Part shown: piece after piece, positions 25,779 through 64,000 of the stretch
How the letters are laid out: the number at the start of each line of letters is the position of its first letter
Numbering within the stretch: the first letter of the stretch is position 1
DNA from: Kudoa neothunni
Taxonomy: Eukaryota > Animalia > Cnidaria
Assembly: GCA_964304625.1 (NCBI GenBank)
Contig: OZ199838.1
Location: forward strand, 4,675,354-4,739,353
DNA: 64,000 nt
Reading direction: 5' to 3'
Program-made: the position numbers and the translations under genes
The notes under the pieces: model-generated
The model's input: the letters and a program-made list of their open reading frames with translations, nothing else
Databases searched by the model: none
Told to the model about the DNA's origin: nothing

Positions 25779-28545
25779 TCAGCTGTTTCTAGGGAATGGC
25801 TGATTGGAAAAGGATTTCAAATCGTTGGTTCTGTTGTCGTTATTGTTATAAAAATTTGGCCTTGAAAGGTTGGAATCATATACGAATTGGGTGGGTGGTT
25901 TTGAGGGTTGCGACGAATAGTGGCTGGGTGTGTTACTATGCGATTGGGTGTATGGGCTGTTTTGGGAAGAGGAGACACTTAAACCAAGGTTGTTCAAGTT
26001 ATGCATGGCATTATTGGTGGCGGGTTGTGACGGAGAAAACATAGTAGCAGACGAATTAGAGTTGAGATAGTTTGTCCAATTGTTGATCAAAGAGTTGGCA
26101 GCCGACTTGATCGAGTTGTCAAAGCTACTAGAGGGATTGACTATACAGCCAAGTTGATTCATAACAATTTTGCCAACAGAATCGGTATTTGTAAGCGTTG
26201 ATGAAGCCTGGGCCTCCGCTACAAAATATTTATTGTAGATGAGCGTCATACCATTTGAGGTTTTGCTGACGGCGCTCAAAATGCCAATCACACAAGAGAT
26301 CACTCCAGCATCATCGCTGAAGAGCAATTGCGTAAGCGAGTCCAAAAACTCGGAGGTGACAACAGTATTAATAATTTCATACGAGTTTCTACCGCTACAA
26401 CTGCCCACAAAAATAAACATCAAAATTATAGCATCTTCTATAAGTTTATTATAGAGAGAGATTTGTTTTGTCAATTCTTTGTTGGAATCCTTGCTGGTTG
26501 CATCATTGGTTAATGCATAGAATTGTTTGATCATTTCAATCGAATATCGTAATATATTTGTAGTCTTCTGAGCAACTTGTAACGAGAAGAAATCATTCAG
26601 AGACGACTCATTATTGATGATCACATTGGAGATCACTGACATGGTTGCCTTTTTGAGATGGGGAAAAAAATCATCAGCACTATCATTGAACAACAGATTG
26701 AGGCAGTTGGATAGGAATTGGAAACAATTCAACGATTTCAATGTGGCAATGGCATGATCAACAAATTTGTGTTGCGATGTGATATTGCGAAGAACATACA
26801 TTGTCGGTTCGATAATTTCTTTGAAGGCGTAGGCGGTGGAACACAAAGTGACCAACGCTTCCAACCCTCCAGATCTGACCAATGTTTCTTTGTTGTCTTG
26901 ATTGTTACAAGTGAGGTTAGCAAGAATGCCCACCGCACAAGCTACCAACGACGGTTCTGAGATAGATTTGGTTGGATGGGATCCACTTGTCTTATCCCTA
27001 TCTTCATCGCCTTTATTATCGACAGTAGTGGTGGGATTCGATTCCTTGGTAGCAGTTGACAAATCGCTAATTTGGACATGAATAAATCGGGTACATATGA
27101 CCAAGAGTTCTTTAAGATTGTGATCATTTCCACAGACATCAGAAAAATTTCGAAGCGCCCACAACGATGTACATGCAATTCTTCTACTTTTGTTCAATAA
27201 CAACTCTGTTAATACTGGCATTATATTTTGTTGGAGAAGAGCCATTTTGGAGGGGTTATTAGTTGATAATGATTTCACAAATCGACAAACCGTAAAAAGT
27301 AATTTTTCAAATTTATTTGTTCTGAGAAGATACACCAATTGTGCATGTAAATCTGTATTTAGCGCACTGATTAGAACCTGGGAATTTCCAATTGAAAGAA
27401 AATGCAACACATCCGCAACCAATGTAACGAATTTGGGGTTTTTCACTTTTAATAATGGAACAATTTTATCAAAACAATTAGTTTCCAAAACATGACTCCT
27501 CAATTCGGGAAATTTGACCAACAGTGTATGAACCGTAGCTACAGCATAGAATGCCGTAGCTTCTACCGACGAAATTGTCAGTTCGCAGATCACTTTGATG
27601 GCGTTTGAAGTAGCAATGTAATGATTTACAAATACATCGCTGGTCATCAAATGATAGATGATAGCAGTACAATAACGAATCACATTTGGATTGTTCTGTA
27701 AACGTATAATCGCATTGACAAGCGCACCACTCAAATCAGTATTCCCACAAAGCACATATCTGCAAGCTTCCTTCTTTGATAACAAATAGATCAGATAGGC
27801 AGCTCGCGACGCTTCACTATCAGGTGCGGTGTTCAGAATATTGATCGCTTGTGGTAGGCAGTTGAACGCTCGCTGTGCGTCGGTTTCATAATTGACTATC
27901 TTGGAGACATTTCCACACAACATACCAACGAGCGACTCAAGTTGCGACAGATTTGAAGGCTGTCTATTCATCTGAGCATTATTCTGCTGTAGATATGCAG
28001 ATGTATTGTTGTTGTTCATGTCTGTAACTAAATTGACTCGTTTAGAAAACAAAGTAAAAATTTATGCAACTACTAGGTTGAGTTTGAGTCACGTTAACAA
28101 AATTGTTACCACATAAATTGGGTGCACTAGCGTTTTGAGGAAATATATTCGGCCTAGGCATCCCCGAACTTATAGTTGGATGTCCTTTGCTATTGGTGGA
28201 ACCAATAGTAGATATAAAATTGGTCAGATTTTTCATCTGATACATTGTGCTATTGTTGTAGTTGTTAATAACTGGATCCGACGAAACATTATTCAATGGG
28301 GCTGCATTACAGTCAACACTAGCAGCTGATACCATTCCGCTGTTAAAAGCGCTCCATTCCCAGTTGCCAAGACCGGCTGAATTATTGCATGCGGTGCTGT
28401 TATACGATGAACCGCCTCCCATTTGACTGCCCATATTTGTGTTACTGCTGCTGGAGAAATTTAACGTAGGTAACATATAATCGTTGGGATTGATGTTCAT
28501 GAGCAAGGATGCAAAATCGATATCATATCGATTTGGCATATTCAT
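25779..28545 (-). CDS. CTNNB1: Divergent beta-catenin/armadillo; at least 2 exons, 5' end unresolved
   Basis: Armadillo motifs align to beta-catenin: IVNYETDA (INYQDDA), LSKKEACR, FYAVATVHTLL, EKLL, LWALRNFSD and CAVGILANLTCNNQDNK. ORFs 28042-28545 and 25779-28052 join through a 46-nt GT-AG intron at 28028-28073. Confidence 0.9.
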
Positions 28546-43101: not shown

Positions 43102-43929
43102 AGACCTTGTTACTCCGTTTTATGGCGCTGGAAAAGGAGTTACTGTCGATAACTTTTTTACCTCGGTTCTATTAGCGAAGGAATTGCATGCCAACAAAAT
43201 AACTATGCCTAGAACCATCCGTGCCAATAAGCGTGAGATACCACCTGAGTTTTTAAAATCACCTGAATGTGAAGTATTTTCTTCAATTTTCGGGTTCAAT
43301 GGAGACTTAACTTTGGTTTCTTATGTGCCTAAGAAAAATTACGCAATCAACCTCTTGTCGACGGAGCATCATGATATTCCTATCGATAATAAGACGAGGA
43401 AAAGACCTAGCATAATCGCTCATTATAATAAAACCGAAGGCGAGGCCTGCAACGCAGAAAAGATGACCTTGTCTTATTCGTGGTCCAGACTTGCTCGTAG
43501 ATGGCCATTGAAAATTTTCATGGACATGCTAGATATTGCAGCGCTCAACGCCAACATTCTATGGAAAAATGAATATCCAAACTGGAAGAAAAATTGTAGA
43601 AGTAAGAGGCAGCATTTTCTAAGACAACTCTCCGTGGAGTTAGCAAGACCAAATGTTTCTAATCGCCAAACTGAGTCTAATAGATATTCAAGATCTATAA
43701 AATATGGTTTTAGTCCATTACACGAGAATAGTGATAATTACTGCACCAACGAGTTCCCCTTGCGTTAAAAGGCGCTTTCACCAATACGAAATATAAATTG
43801 ATGTCATTACTGCCCTAGGAACATGGACAAAAAACTCACATTACATGTTTCGGCTGCTACAAATTTCTTTGCGCGAAACATCGAAATCAAAAAATCCTCA
43901 CCTACTGTCCGAATTGTAACCAATGATTA
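43102..43929 (+). pseudogene. piggyBac transposase C-terminal half
   Basis: Reads GVTVDNFFTSVLLAKEL...LVSYVPKKN..LLSTEH..YNKTEG..RRWPLKIF..LDIAALNA, with a C-terminal Cys-rich domain at about 43800-43920. Confidence 0.85.
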
Positions 43930-52634: not shown

Positions 52635-53463
52635 CTATTGGTGGACACATCGGAACAGGTCAAGACATACGTCCTTATAGGATAGGCCCCATTTGTCGAC
52701 CTCCAGTCGAAAATGTTTAATCAACAAACTTCCCAAAGCGAGCAAATATTTGCACTAAAACAGATTTAATGGCCAATTTAATAATTGTAGACAACATACA
52801 GATTCTATTTCCGTTTCCCCAATCGCACTTGAACATGCTTCATCCATAAATGTTCCACTTATGAATAGTTTCTGAAGACGGCTCCTCTCAGTGAGAAATG
52901 CTGATAGTATTATCTACATGAAAATAAATGTTATATTTTTTATTTTTATCGATATAATTACTTCACAGGTGTCGCAGAAAGGATCGTCACCCCTTAACTC
53001 ACCTGCATTATCACAGTTATAAGATAGTTTCAACAGTTTCTCCATTAGTGTTACCTTTTCTGTCATGGAATCGTTCGCCGTATTTCCAGTACGTGGAATT
53101 GGAAAACGACGTTTGAAGATCCACCCTCTTGTTTAATCCCTCAACGAGTTTTCGATAAATCGACTGCATTACTGGACACTATAACGAATTCAATTCATTT
53201 TACAGTAGAAAATATTGCTGTGTATCGTAATCGACAACAAATTGGAGCAGCTATTTCATAGAAATCGTTCGGAATCTGATTTAAGTACTCTCTTCCAGTT
53301 AATTTGTTCCTTGAAGCTAGCATAAGCTAACCATTGTTATCATACTTTATGCAAAACTATATTTACTTTATTTGTAATCAACAGACTGAGACAAAATTGA
53401 ATATATACTAAAAATGATACATTAAAAAAATTATCTAACAATACTTATGGAGTAGAAATTCAT
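52635..53463 (-). CDS. Probable secreted saposin-like protein, paralog 1 (7 exons)
   Basis: Spliced product: MNFYSIIYIQFCLSLLITNK^LMLASRNKLTGREYLNQIPNDFYEIAAPICCRLRYT^CPVMQSIYRKLVEGLNKRVDLQTSFSNSTYWKYGERFHDRK^GELRGDDPFCDTCE^IILSAFLTERSRLQKLFISGTFMDEACSSAIGETEIES^CKYLLALGSLLIKHFRLEVDKWGLSYKDVCLDLFRCVHQ*. Six-Cys spacing C-x2-C-x27-C-x11-C-x28-C-x5-C fits a saposin B-type domain. Confidence 0.8.
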
Positions 53464-53735
53464 TTTCTGATTTTGTCCGCCTATATAATATAAAAAATCT
53501 TTTTTTCGGGACGAAATACATTTCTTATCATTTATAATCATTAAATTTATACAATAGCATCTATTGATAAATTTACAGCAAATTCATGGACTAAACTGAT
53601 AGAATTCAACTTCTTGAGATTAAAGATAATTATTTGCTAACCAAATTGATTAAAAAACAATCTAGAATAGACTTATTGTGATTTCAATATCTGAAATCCT
53701 TTTTATATTTAGTCTCAGATAATTAGCTTTAAAAT

Positions 53736-54902
53736 GGGCTGAAATTTGATCTAAGCCCCCATAATCCTCAATAAAATAATGCTTATATCTATTATAAAAA
53801 CAAATTTTATACAAAACGCAACAAAAAAGCTAATAAGAGTTGTTTGATTGTAGATTGATTTTTAGAGATTGTATGAAATCACTCCATAAGTCGTGTTGAT
53901 TTTTTCTTCTCTATTGGAATTCACCAAGAAATTCATTAATGTCATCCATAAGAACTGTTCCATCTTCATTAACTGATGATGTTCTATTTCTTGGGGATAT
54001 TTGGTATTTTATGACACGCCAAATGCCCTCAATAGTGTTGGTGTGATCTCTCGAAGCATTATCCACATATTCTATACTGTGGTTAACAGTGAGGCGAGTG
54101 TAGAAATTACGAAATGTGGCGTAGCCTTTGAAACAGTCATTTATGATAATAGAGTCTGGTTTAACATAGGTTTTGATTTTTTTAATTAGAGTTTCAGCAG
54201 TTCTATCAGGGACCTCCATTAGACACATTATTCATTGGGATGTCCTTTCAACACATCCAAGAACCCATGCTTCATTAACTCCATGGTCTTCGTTATGCTT
54301 TGTTTTACCAAACTTCGACCCCTCAATTTCTACGATTGTGTTTTCTTCTCAAATTATGACGTCCTTGAATCTTACACTGTCGGCCATCATTTGTCTAAGG
54401 TAGTGCGAATAGTTTGTGACAGTTTGAGAAGAGTGTCCAGTTATAGTGATCATGTTAAGGGTTTTAACACCCACTAACCAATAATAATAATAATAATAAG
54501 CCAACTGCATGAAATCGTTAAATTTAAGTTTCATACTTTTGAAGATCATGAAGTAAAAAGTGGAGACTTCTTTCCGGCAAAACTTTTCCCAACATCGCCA
54601 ATTTTTTCTGTGGATCGAAAATCTGAGTCCACCACATTTACTGCAATCAGTGGGCTCTTCAAAAACGCCAAGTTCAACAGGATAATTAATGGGATTTTTC
54701 TTTTCATTGAAAATTTTATCGAATGTGATTTTTGGTGTAATCATTGTTTGTAAATAGCGACTTAATTCTTATATATCATGTTTGTGATTCGGTAATCCTC
54801 ATGGTGCGATACTAGTACTACCAGCACTAAACAAACGATTAGCTTAGCCGCTAATCTTGATAATGTTACAGGATTAGTTGGGGATGGATATCAAATATAA
54901 TC
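53736..54902 (-). mobile_element. Merlin element (same family as 49416-50521), decayed
   Basis: ORFs 54349-54744 and 53911-54228 (VPDRTAETL...TVNHS...HTNTIEGIW). TIR GGGCTGAAATTTGAT; degenerate TSD TTTAAAAT/TTTGAAAC. Confidence 0.88.
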
Positions 54903-55024
54903 TTTGAAACGTATTATGGCGCAGTAAAAACAAAAATACGCATATAAAACGAAATATTAATCATGAGGACAATAAGACTATAGCCCTCGAAATATAATTG
55001 GTTAGGTTGCTCACCACGATTATT

Positions 55025-55812
55025 TTAATGATCACATAAAAAGAGATTTTTGCAGTACTCTCTAGAAGAAATTCCAGGATCTCCATCTCTAAGTTTGAGC
55101 CTTGTTATCAGGCATCCGCACAGGTGTAGGATATAATTACACTATTAAGAATTTTAGCTTAATTTTTATGTCGATATTTACAGAAATTCGATGAATTCCT
55201 TCGGAAAATTGACCGCAGAAAGATTCTTTAAAATCAGCAGATACGAACAATTGAGATAGACGCAACTTTTCTTGAAGTACTGTAATGGTGAACGACTAAC
55301 CACCTTTTATATATAACAAATATTTAATATGTTACCGTGCAAAAATGGCAGTTTGGATTGAAGCCGACCTTTATAACTGGGAAAAGATGGTTCTTAAACA
55401 GAATAAATTATGTGGGGGGCTACCTTCACGTTGGCTACATTGATTTGTATCAGAGCATGATATGTGAGAATTAAATTTGTTTATTAGATTGTCTGTAAAA
55501 TTTTGATGGATGAATTGCATTATTGGACACTAAACAATTGAATTGTTTATATAACAAGTAGTACTGTGTGAGGTAATCGGGCACAGAGTCGATGTGTTTG
55601 TTCATACACACCTTTGAACATTGGACTGAAAAAACCTTTGTGGTTGAATACACTCATTTTTATCTAAAAGATACATCTCTACTTCTAATAAATTAGATGT
55701 TTTTACCTTCATAAGAATCATAAAACTAAGAAGAACTGAAACGGTCACTAAATAAAATTACATAATTTTCCGATGTAAGTATAGGAATTATACCCACGAT
55801 ATGAGGTTGCAT
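55025..55812 (-). CDS. Probable secreted saposin-like protein, paralog 2 (7 exons)
   Basis: Spliced product: MQPHIVVTVSVLLSFMILMK^IKMSVFNHKGFFSPMFKGVYEQTHRLCARLPHT^CPIMQFIHQNFTDNLINKFNSHISCSDTNQCSQRE^VIKVGFNPNCHFCT^SFTITVLQEKLRLSQLFVSADFKESFCGQFSEGIHRIS^CNYILHLCGCLITRLKLRDGDPGISSREYCKNLFLCDH*. All introns are GT-AG, at the same positions and phases as paralog 1. Confidence 0.82.
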
Positions 55813-57270
55813 TTTTCCCAAACAACAATTCTTTATCTTTTAATATACACTTTTTGTTTATTTAATATTGATCTGTTACAAATTCATTTATGAATGATTG
55901 TTTATAGATTTATCTTATAGATACTACGTATAAATTTGATAAAATTGTTATAAATATTGCTGCGTTTTATCGTTTGGTAGTTAAATTTTATAAAACAGTT
56001 TTTATTAACTTATAGATGCAAAAATATTAACTAAAAGCATATTCTAAATGATACATAAACTTAAATTTTTAAATCAACACATATATGAGGATATTTGACC
56101 ATAAAATATTTCTACTGGAAACAATCACCTTACATAATTAACTTCTGAAATAATGATAGGAATGGAGTGATATTTTAATATATTCTTTCCGATGTTTGTT
56201 AAAAGACATGATTTTTCCGGCGGTTCCATGTAAGAATAGAATAACTTTATTAGTATATATACAAAATCGGTGTTATTTGATAATTTGACCCGAGTTTTAT
56301 CAGGCTCTCGTTGACTGAAATTGAATTTAATGTGTAATACTTAATTAGAAAAGTGTTGATTGTATTTTTGTATTAATATTATTATACAATTTCACATATC
56401 TTAGGGTTATCGAGGAAAAAGGACTATTTTTGGTTTCTAAAGCTCGAAATCAAAATTAGAGTAGGATTTTAATGCTAGGGAGTTAAATAAAGTTATGATC
56501 ATTAAACCTTTTTTTGCAGCTAGTTAATTTTAGCTACACTTCATGATAATTATTGCTCATTATGAGGGAATTATGAACTCTCCTTCTTACAGTAATCTAT
56601 TCAATTTAAATTACTTTATTTCGCCCCTGATGGCTCCATGTTTATTGATAATGTAACGATGGCGTTGCATGGAAATACAGACAAAATTCGGCTGATAGAT
56701 TCGAGGCATCAATTAAAAATACAACAAACTTATCTTGGCAACATCGGCGCTCTTTGTTTGTATTATAATATATAAAAACTGTACAATTTATACTATTGTA
56801 GTAAATACAAAACAATTAGATTTTTCAGCCTGTTGGAAATAGCATGTGAGCTAATACGCCAAAAAATTAAAGCATCTTGAGTTTACTAAACAATAATACT
56901 ATTTTCTATAATTTTTAAAATTAGTTAAGCACTTAAGTCTATGATTTTTATATTAAATGTAATAAATTCGTTTTGTTAAATTATTTTTTATATTACTATG
57001 TTTTGTCTTACAAAAATAATTAAAAGTATAATCCATATACCCTATCTCCTTTGTTTATCTTCGCAAATATTAACCACGAACGCAAACAATATTTAGTACT
57101 AAAAAAAAATAAGAAATAAAAATAAATTATTATTTGATTTATTAGATTTAAGTTATTCTTACATGATTTCAGTTTATGTTAATGATTAAATAGCAAAAAA
57201 TAAAAATCTGCTGTCATAATTAGAAACTAAAATAAGTGAAACAGTAATATTTTTTAATATAGTAAACTAA

Positions 57271-58106
57271 TCAATTAGTCGGGTGATCACATAGGAACTT
57301 TGTAAGACAAAGATCATAGTAATTGATTCCGCTATCAGTTTCTTTGATTTTCAATTGACTCAATAAGTATCCAGCAAAATCAAGCATATAAAAGCACTAA
57401 ACTCATTCAATCATACAGCTATAGTAACCGAGAAATACAGCAATTTTGTCATAGTGATGCTGAATATACCCACAAACCATTTGTTGTAAATGTTTGTTCC
57501 TTAGCAGAGAAACGATACGATCCCGTTCGACACAAAGGGTGAATTGAAAGGCCTTTAATATAGTCACCCTTTTTAATATTTAACTCCCAATTTACCTTGC
57601 ACAGTTCACATCTTGGATCTTGAATTACTAAAAACAACTTTAGTTGATCAATAAAATTAAAATATATTTTCTTGAAAGTTCATTCAGTGATTCCATGTAA
57701 ATTAGATCCCTAGATTTTTGTTCAAAGCTTTTACGGATTGACTCCATCAATGGACACTATGATAACTATGGATGTGTAGAAGTAATTTAGCTACTGTGAA
57801 TGGAAGAGATTCACAAGCTTGGGTAGTCAGAGTGCGAAGTGTTAATGTCGTGTTTACTATCAATCTATCATCATTGGTTTTTGAGTTAAATATATCAAAA
57901 TTCTAGGTGTTTATAGAACATACCATGGTAGCCCCTACATACTATAAAACAGTTACCGCGGTTAAATTAGTTTTTGTGTTCCATGGATGTGCTTTCAACC
58001 CATCTAACCACCAACCTAGAAGGCACACTAAACGTAATTAACCCAAAAAGTTCTATCTAGAACAAAATTTTCGTGGAAATAATCCAATACCAATCTTTAA
58101 TTTCAT
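57271..58106 (-). CDS. Probable secreted saposin-like protein, paralog 3 (7 exons; one donor uncertain)
   Basis: Spliced product: MKLKIVCLLGWWLDGLKAHPWNTKTNLTA^NFDIF...TTQACESLPFT^CPLMESI(RKSFEQ...)^IQDPRCELCK^AFQFTLCVERDRIVSLLRNKHLQQMVCGYIQHHYDKIA^CFYMLDFAGYLLSQLKIKETDSGINYYDLCLTKFLCDHPTN*. Confidence 0.78.
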
Positions 58107-62587: not shown

Positions 62588-64000
62588 CAGTCAGTGACCG
62601 GTTTTACGTACTTTTAAATATCACATTTATTTTACAAATTATATCATGAACAAGTAAATAATATATTTACTAACACATTTATTTATAAATTTCAATGAAA
62701 AAACTTTATATGCACCTAAATTTTGCAATCAAAATATCACGTGATTCACAAATTTTACGCATCTTTTCTGACCAAATTGGTTTATAGTTTTCATAAAAGT
62801 GACGTAAATGGCTAATAAAAATAAATCTAAGAATAAAACAATTGAAGAGAAATATAAAATTATTAAATATTTTCATGGAATCACCTCAAGAAGTGCGAAG
62901 GTTGCTACTATAAAACATTTTAATATATCAACAATATCCACTCTTAATGGTATTTTAAAAAATGAAGAGAAAATTATAGACATGTTTGAGGGGGGATTGG
63001 TTTGTAAAAATAGGAAAAATCTAAATGATGGCACCAATATTTCCCTCGATGAATGTGTCTATAATTGGATATACTGGGTGCGATCAAAAAAAATTGAATT
63101 AACTGCCACCGACATCAGTGATAAGAGAAACGAAATTGCCAGAGAAAAGAATTTACCATCAAATGCAACATACGGTTGGTTTCGATGTTTTAAGTCGAGA
63201 TTTAATCTCAAAAAAATAAATTTCCATGGCGAAGCGGCTGACATTGACCCATGTACAAGTTCTGAATGGCTTTCTCAACTCAAAAACTTATGTGAAGGAT
63301 ATAGTGATGATTGTATCTATAATATAGATGAAACCGCGTTGTTTTATCAGCAACAACGAGGTATATTTTTTCATTTGTCATACTTGCATATTTTATATAA
63401 GTAAAAGTTATGTAAGCTCCATAGAAAGTCATACAAAAGGAACAAGAAAGTTTAAAAAACGAATAACCGTTTTGTTCGGTGCATCACTGAGCGGAGAAAA
63501 ACTTGAACCTTTGGTTATTGGACCTAGTCGAAAGCCCAGATGCTTTAAAAATATAAATAGCCTTCCAGTTTTATATGAATCCAACAAGAAGTCTTGGATG
63601 ACTAGTGAAATCTTCCTAAGATATCTAACTAAAATCAATTCTATTTTCACGAAAAAAAATAAAAATGTTCTAATTTTTTTAGATAATGCAACCTCTCACC
63701 AAAAAAAACTATTCAGTAACATAAAGCTGATCTTTTTACCCCAAAATACCACTAGTTTATTGCAACCCCTAGATCAAGGGATTATTCACTCATTCAAATG
63801 TGCATATAAGAGGAAAATGATCAAAAAATATATTTCATGTATTGAGGTGGGACTAGAACCAACTCCACCAACCATTTTAGATGCGATGATGTTGATTAAA
63901 CAAGCGTGGGAATGTGTAAGCGTATCCACCATCATAAATTGCTTTCAGAAAGCTGGGTTTTCATCTCGACAAACGGTCCCTGTCAAAACTAACAGCATTT
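62588..64000 (+). mobile_element. pogo/Tigger transposon with apparently open, one-intron transposase (runs off window)
   Basis: End TA-CAGTCAGTGACCGG. CDS 62808-63360, intron 63361-63424, then 63425->64000. Motifs GWFRCFKSRFNL, YNIDETALFY, KKRITVLF, SNKKSWMT, LDNATSH and FLPQNTTSLLQPLDQGII. Confidence 0.9.

Follow-up and report, generated by a model that had tools for sequence, protein, structure and literature searches.

Expanded families of saposin-like proteins (SAPLIPs) are common in parasites and amoebae. The amoebapores, the naegleriapores, the SPP proteins or caenopores of Caenorhabditis elegans and the Apl proteins of Dictyostelium are all small signal-peptide proteins with a single six-cysteine SapB module, and each of these families is lineage-specific, very divergent and often arranged in tandem. 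Here we describe 18 genes in the genome of the cnidarian parasite Kudoa neothunni, three of which form a minus-strand array at positions 52635-58106 of the window, the 64,000-nucleotide stretch of DNA analysed here (contig 1:4675354-4739353 of a 40.3 Mb assembly of four contigs; AT-rich, with a GC content of 26-39%). On balance, we read these genes as a lineage-specific family whose products combine a hydrophobic leader, a decayed saposin-like module and a complete SapB-type module. Like the families named above, the Kudoa proteins are small, have a six-cysteine module and have multiplied into a divergent, lineage-specific family with tandem copies. Unlike them, they have an extra, apparently decayed half-module upstream, they escape the Pfam SapB models when searched exon by exon, and they show a longer interval between the fourth and fifth cysteines, a histidine that almost always follows the last cysteine at a distance of two residues, and a charge that is not consistently cationic. 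No lytic activity is known for the Kudoa proteins.

Among parasites, the helminth saposin-like proteins (hookworm Na-SLP-1 and Ac-SLP-1, and the fluke SAPs) are secreted, membrane-binding proteins of ~100-140 amino acids that share 11-27% identity with human saposins (PMC3184995). The Kudoa family resembles them in parasite origin, small size class and low identity. The helminth proteins, however, are detectable by sequence, have solved structures and consist of one module, whereas the Kudoa genes would encode one complete and one degenerate module. No paper connecting saposin-like proteins with Myxozoa, the group to which Kudoa belongs, was found in the literature searched. The first-pass annotation of the window, made from its letters, had put the array forward as the best candidate for an undescribed system. 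This was an overstatement, since expanded SAPLIP families are already known in other parasites; what is new here is the lineage and the degree of divergence.

Each of the three window genes has seven exons separated by introns of 35-63 nucleotides (nt), and each model, read from the sequence and checked by script, runs in frame from ATG to stop. The encoded proteins are 185 (gene 1), 178 (gene 2) and 188 (gene 3) amino acids long. The gene models, together with one example of each cysteine module, are as follows.

57271..58106, minus strand: gene 1, with exons 58106-58091, 58027-57957, 57902-57795, 57756-57666 (or -57735), 57627-57596, 57552-57439 and 57396-57271
55025..55812, minus strand: gene 2, with exons 55812-55794, 55747-55707, 55663-55565, 55529-55424, 55376-55336, 55295-55182 and 55141-55025
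52635..53463, minus strand: gene 3, with exons 53463-53445, 53407-53367, 53326-53219, 53178-53055, 53002-52962, 52913-52800 and 52754-52635
52635..53002, minus strand: complete six-cysteine module of gene 3 (exons 5-7), with C-x2-C in exon 5, Cys 3 in exon 6 and Cys 4-6 in exon 7
55424..55663, minus strand: N-terminal partial module of gene 2 (exons 3-4), with a cysteine and then ..LP six residues before the end of exon 3, and an exon 4 that starts with a cysteine and ends in C-x5-C

Much of what the first-pass annotation had said about these genes stands. It had described three minus-strand, seven-exon genes fragmented by short introns, with intron positions and phases in common, and the phases are indeed 1, 0, 0, 1, 0, 0 in all three. 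Both end coordinates that it gave (52635 and 58106) are exact, the motifs that it listed can be found in the sequence (C..LP.T, then CP, and C.H at the C terminus), and the architecture of a hydrophobic N terminus, a partial cysteine module and a complete six-cysteine module holds in each of the three genes. Exon 1 measures 16 nt in gene 1 and 19 nt in genes 2 and 3, with corresponding values of 71 and 41 nt for exon 2 and of 32 and 41 nt for exon 5; across the three genes, exon 3 spans 99-108 nt, exon 6 114 nt and exon 7 117-126 nt. The introns are GT..AG except for two, intron 4 of gene 1 and intron 3 of gene 3. Gene 2 is the cleanest copy, as every one of its introns is GT..AG and its N-terminal module retains the C-x5-C pair, and gene 1 is the least regular, with an AT donor and atypical exons 2 and 5. 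GC content is 36.9% in the exons of the three models and 26.0% in their introns, equal to the values published for K. neothunni (36.84% and 26.00%; introns there average 49 bp; PMC12239612).

The array is part of a larger family. Separate profiles of exons 3, 4, 6 and 7 were run against the whole ~40 Mb genome, and each of these four independent profiles returned the same 18 loci, at seven places, and nothing else of note. Three of the loci lie in the window, two on contig 2 and 13 on contig 3, an array of nine among them, so that the search for further copies proposed in the first-pass annotation added 15 loci beyond the window. The penultimate exon encodes 37-38 amino acids at all 18 loci, is bounded by AG and GT, is in phase 0 and has a cysteine at position 27; the intron that follows it is always 37-47 nt long, and the last exon always opens with a cysteine codon, the fourth framework cysteine, directly after the AG acceptor. 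The 41-nt exon with C-x2-C is found in 14 of the 18 copies, and exon 3 is exactly 108 nt long in 13. Every exon is open in all 18 paralogs (the chance of an open 38-codon frame is ~0.046 in the local base composition).

Over the four exon alignments, pairs of copies are 14-44% identical, with the exception of one pair at 85%, in keeping with the high divergence between cysteines that had been noted for the window genes. The latter share only 20-27% identity with one another, and synonymous sites between them are saturated. Conserved splice geometry and open frames at 14-44% identity therefore identify the 18 loci as selected coding genes rather than chance frames. They constitute a lineage-specific, unannotated family of proteins of ~160-190 amino acids. 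The published annotation of K. neothunni used protein hints only, as too few RNA reads mapped to the parasite (PMC12239612). Myxozoan genomes are full of orphan genes, and families such as these 18 genes escape annotation from protein hints.

On contig 3, the paralogs L006 and L008 (~7.452 and 7.4585 Mb) share 98-100% identity over the upstream region and on to the end of intron 5, after which identity falls to 76-80% from exon 6 on and to 66% downstream. The drop marks a breakpoint of recombination or gene conversion where the complete cysteine module starts. In another paralog on the same contig (L013:1130-1309, ~9.683 Mb), exons 4 and 5 are merged into one open exon of 180 nt, which indicates the loss of an intron. 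In none of the 18 paralogs can the whole domain be read as a single open frame, since TAG always ends the intron that precedes the last exon.

The link to saposins starts from the cysteines. Counting residues over exon lengths, we found the framework cysteines of the complete module at index 0, 3, 31, 42/43, 71/72 and 77/78 in all 18 copies (0, 3, 31, 43, 72 and 78 in gene 3, whose complete module contains exactly six cysteines). In 40 bona fide SapB domains used as comparators, the corresponding positions are 0, 3, 29-31, 40-42, 63-67 and 69-73. All 18 copies thus have the six-cysteine spacing of SapB domains, the interval between Cys 4 and Cys 5 excepted. A SapB domain is a bundle of four or five helices with disulfides 1-6, 2-5 and 3-4. 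It is the fold and the cysteines that define SAPLIPs, whose sequences are only 11-27% identical (PMC3184995). One further near-constant and family-specific feature, a histidine that follows the last framework cysteine at a distance of two residues (17 of 18 copies), is not canonical for saposins.

An exhaustive search of 1.84 billion protein representatives with the last-exon profile yielded six matches. Pfam identifies four of the six as multi-SapB proteins; they contain 5-12 SapB domains, score 120-330 bits in Pfam, and have Cys 5 and Cys 6 exactly in register with the Kudoa profile. These four (P0003-P0006) are prosaposin or prosaposin-like precursors, which have tandem SapB modules in one chain, as the Kudoa proteins probably do. 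They also have in common with the Kudoa C terminus, in register, a motif composed of a glycine, an acidic or amide residue, four residues, a cysteine, five residues and a cysteine. Prosaposins have 4-12 complete modules, 20-25 residues between Cys 4 and Cys 5 and Pfam scores in the range just given, whereas the Kudoa proteins have two modules, one of them incomplete, and no Pfam match exon by exon. An identity as prosaposin was rejected on the grounds of this one complete and one degenerate module and of the absence of a SapA match in Pfam searches of the window exons. A word-indexed protein search with the last-exon alignment was blank, and neither it nor the search of 1.84 billion representatives returned a close relative of the family.

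We also aligned the profiles of exons 3, 4, 6 and 7 to a SapB alignment using hhalign, with 150 column-permuted SapB alignments as a control. Exon 3 was placed on the third-cysteine/LP region of SapB (P 7e-4), with a score reached by none of the 150 permuted controls, and exon 7 on the C-terminal part (P 0.0013; 1 of 150 controls). Exon 4 was likewise placed on the C-terminal part (P 0.011; 3 of 150), and exon 6 on the third cysteine (P 0.058; 5 of 150). The four profiles are thus colinear with the SapB alignment, in the expected order. AlphaFold was run exon by exon on the exon alignments, and its models describe separate exons. It predicted helices at residues 2-18 and 20-37 of exon 6 (predicted local distance difference test (pLDDT) 79) and at residues 3-14 and 26-33 of exon 7 (pLDDT 62). 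These four predicted helices fall at the places of saposin helices 1-4, with Cys 3 in helix 2 and Cys 5 in the last helix.

The N-terminal module is less complete. Across the family, exon 3 has a cysteine and then ..LP six residues before its end, and exon 4 begins with a cysteine; in 9 of 17 copies it also contains C-x5-C (in one case C-x6-C). An intron stands directly before the fourth-cysteine equivalent, in phase 0, in this partial module just as in the complete one. Because the two modules have the same intron placement before Cys 4, and because of where the profiles of exons 3 and 4 align, the sequence suggests that the N-terminal module is a decayed second SapB copy that arose from an old internal duplication of a SapB unit. 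This first copy would have lost its C-x2-C motif in all genes and its last cysteine pair in about half of them, including window genes 1 and 3.

Several results weigh against a saposin fold. The Pfam models SapB_1 (PF05184) and SapB_2 (PF03489) matched none of the 18 copies exon by exon, even at an E value of 10, and a genome scan with both models left the 18 loci untouched, the two marginal matches of each model lying elsewhere. At the exon level, a PDB sequence profile search was blank, as was Foldseek with the exon 6 hairpin model, and features from the ESM Atlas were noise only (scores 0.80). Cys 4 and Cys 5 are 28 residues apart, compared with 20-25 in the SapB comparators, the only interval outside their range. 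Ten of the 18 copies have an odd seventh cysteine at index 50, seven residues past Cys 4, a family-specific trait that is not a canonical saposin feature. The probabilities that hhalign assigns are low, at 1-26%, and scores of this kind can be inflated by cysteine columns. Exons 6 and 7 modelled as two chains gave an ipSAE of 0.01 and an ESMFold pLDDT of <50, which is not evidence either way on the assembled domain.

These proteins might then be real, with a six-cysteine module that adopts a different, possibly new, disulfide-stapled helical fold mimicking the saposin cysteine spacing. The lack of support from Pfam, PDB and Foldseek and the long Cys 4-5 interval would fit such a fold, as would a loop of 12 residues predicted where saposin helix 3 continues and, for what it is worth, the low pLDDT of the two-chain model. 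We nonetheless consider it unlikely, as five of six framework intervals agree with SapB within one residue, the sole informative matches in 1.84 billion proteins are prosaposin-like and in register, and the four exon profiles follow the order of SapB and score better than permuted controls. The cysteine framework, the helix predictions and weak profile matches in register favour the SapB assignment made in the first-pass annotation, which the standard Pfam test, run exon by exon, opposes. We regard this assignment as plausible, if weakly shown, and judge that the complete module probably has a saposin fold. Elsewhere in the genome, one of the only two SapB_2 matches, L028 (contig 1, ~4.0076 Mb), scores 16.7 bits alone and 22.7 bits, above the cut-off, with its in-frame neighbours; this locus may be the canonical saposin gene of the parasite.

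What the proteins might do can be approached from their termini and charge. Residues 3-17, encoded by exons 1-2, form a hydrophobic core (mean Kyte-Doolittle value of 1.9-2.7 over 11 residues), comparable hydrophobic leaders are found in other paralogs, and this leader is probably a signal peptide. The proteins end 1-4 residues past the C.H motif and would therefore lack a membrane anchor. Judged by these features, routing through the secretory pathway is likely. Across the 18 genes, the complete module (exons 5-7) carries a net charge of between -6 and +5, with values of 0, +2 and -5 for the window genes; such a spread does not point to a uniformly cationic lysin of the NK-lysin/granulysin type as the general rule. 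By analogy with other saposin-like proteins, the likeliest activities would be lipid binding or extraction, or a pH-dependent action on membranes. We infer expression, along with secretion, the assembled-domain fold and lipid or membrane activity. As a helical bundle, the complete module would bind or extract lipids, or perturb membranes, with the host muscle cell or parasite compartments as its target; its scaffold would remain fixed while surfaces diverge quickly, and recombination between paralogs would add mosaic variants. If the fold and secretion are true, these proteins would be candidate means by which a reduced cnidarian parasite obtains lipids from host muscle cells or acts on their membranes, and would represent a saposin domain too divergent for the standard models to recognise.

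A bolder possibility is that the 18 genes form a host-facing, diversifying effector repertoire of this muscle-dwelling myxozoan, in which a cysteine-rigid saposin scaffold has its surfaces reshuffled by recombination precisely at the edge of the complete domain, on the pattern of the mosaic pair from contig 3. We give this rather little credence. Were it so, Cnidaria would have a new type of variable arsenal aimed at lipids or membranes, with a possible bearing on how host cells are manipulated or on the softening of muscle after death that is linked to Kudoa. Alternatively, a saposin-like family could act inside the parasite, in lysosomal lipid breakdown or in the building of spores or polar capsules, and not as a secreted effector directed at the host. 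Classical saposins are lysosomal, and a signal peptide also leads to lysosomes. The net charge, mostly near neutral or acidic, is like that of lipid-activator saposins, and a structural SAPLIP is known from Cnidaria, the jellyfish lens crystallin (mentioned in PMC3184995). However, a family of 18 copies that share 14-44% identity and include recombination mosaics looks more like an arms-race repertoire than a set of housekeeping genes, and the marginal canonical SapB_2 match lies elsewhere in the genome; an internal role therefore seems to us improbable, at about the level of a different fold.

We also considered whether the window array is decaying, with one or more copies, gene 1 above all, being unexpressed pseudogenes left by tandem duplication beside a transposon insertion. 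Two splice sites count against intact genes: intron 4 of gene 1 has AT as its donor at the homologous site, in a gene whose exons 2 and 5 are also atypical, and intron 3 of gene 3 has a GC donor, for which the alternative GT would leave an intron of 25 nt. A dead transposase also separates genes 2 and 3. No read from three RNA runs that carry the same species label fell on the region, although the parasite may be absent from these runs, which are thus no test of expression; four DNA-type runs of one study cover the stretch. Gene 1 nevertheless has an in-phase GT donor 69 nt upstream, which would give a protein of 162 amino acids, and all 21 exons are open, with all three models in frame. All three genes retain the framework cysteines and the C-terminal histidine, the contrast in GC content between exons and introns is that of active genes, and gene 2 is free of defects. 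Decay of the array is thus very unlikely in our view, the least probable of the alternatives, and we retain the reading of a family of selected genes with a probable saposin-type module.

Elsewhere in the window, we identified the following elements.

53914..54768, minus strand: decayed remnant of an ISXO2-like (IS1595-type DDE) transposase, between genes 2 and 3 and outside the saposin-like family (Pfam PF12762, E 8.9e-10)
25779-28052, minus strand: armadillo-repeat open reading frame of 757 amino acids in a single open frame (Pfam Arm, E 2.5e-15)
43184-43768 and 62808-63404, both plus strand: fragments of a piggyBac-type transposase (DDE_Tnp_1_7) and of the DNA-binding region of a Tc5/pogo-type transposase

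The frame of the ISXO2-like remnant is broken by stops and contains an internal trinucleotide repeat near 54471-54506. Its DNA word depth is 24-90, compared with 6-8 in the flanks, indicating that the element is multicopy. The armadillo-repeat frame is unusually long and unspliced for the Kudoa genome.

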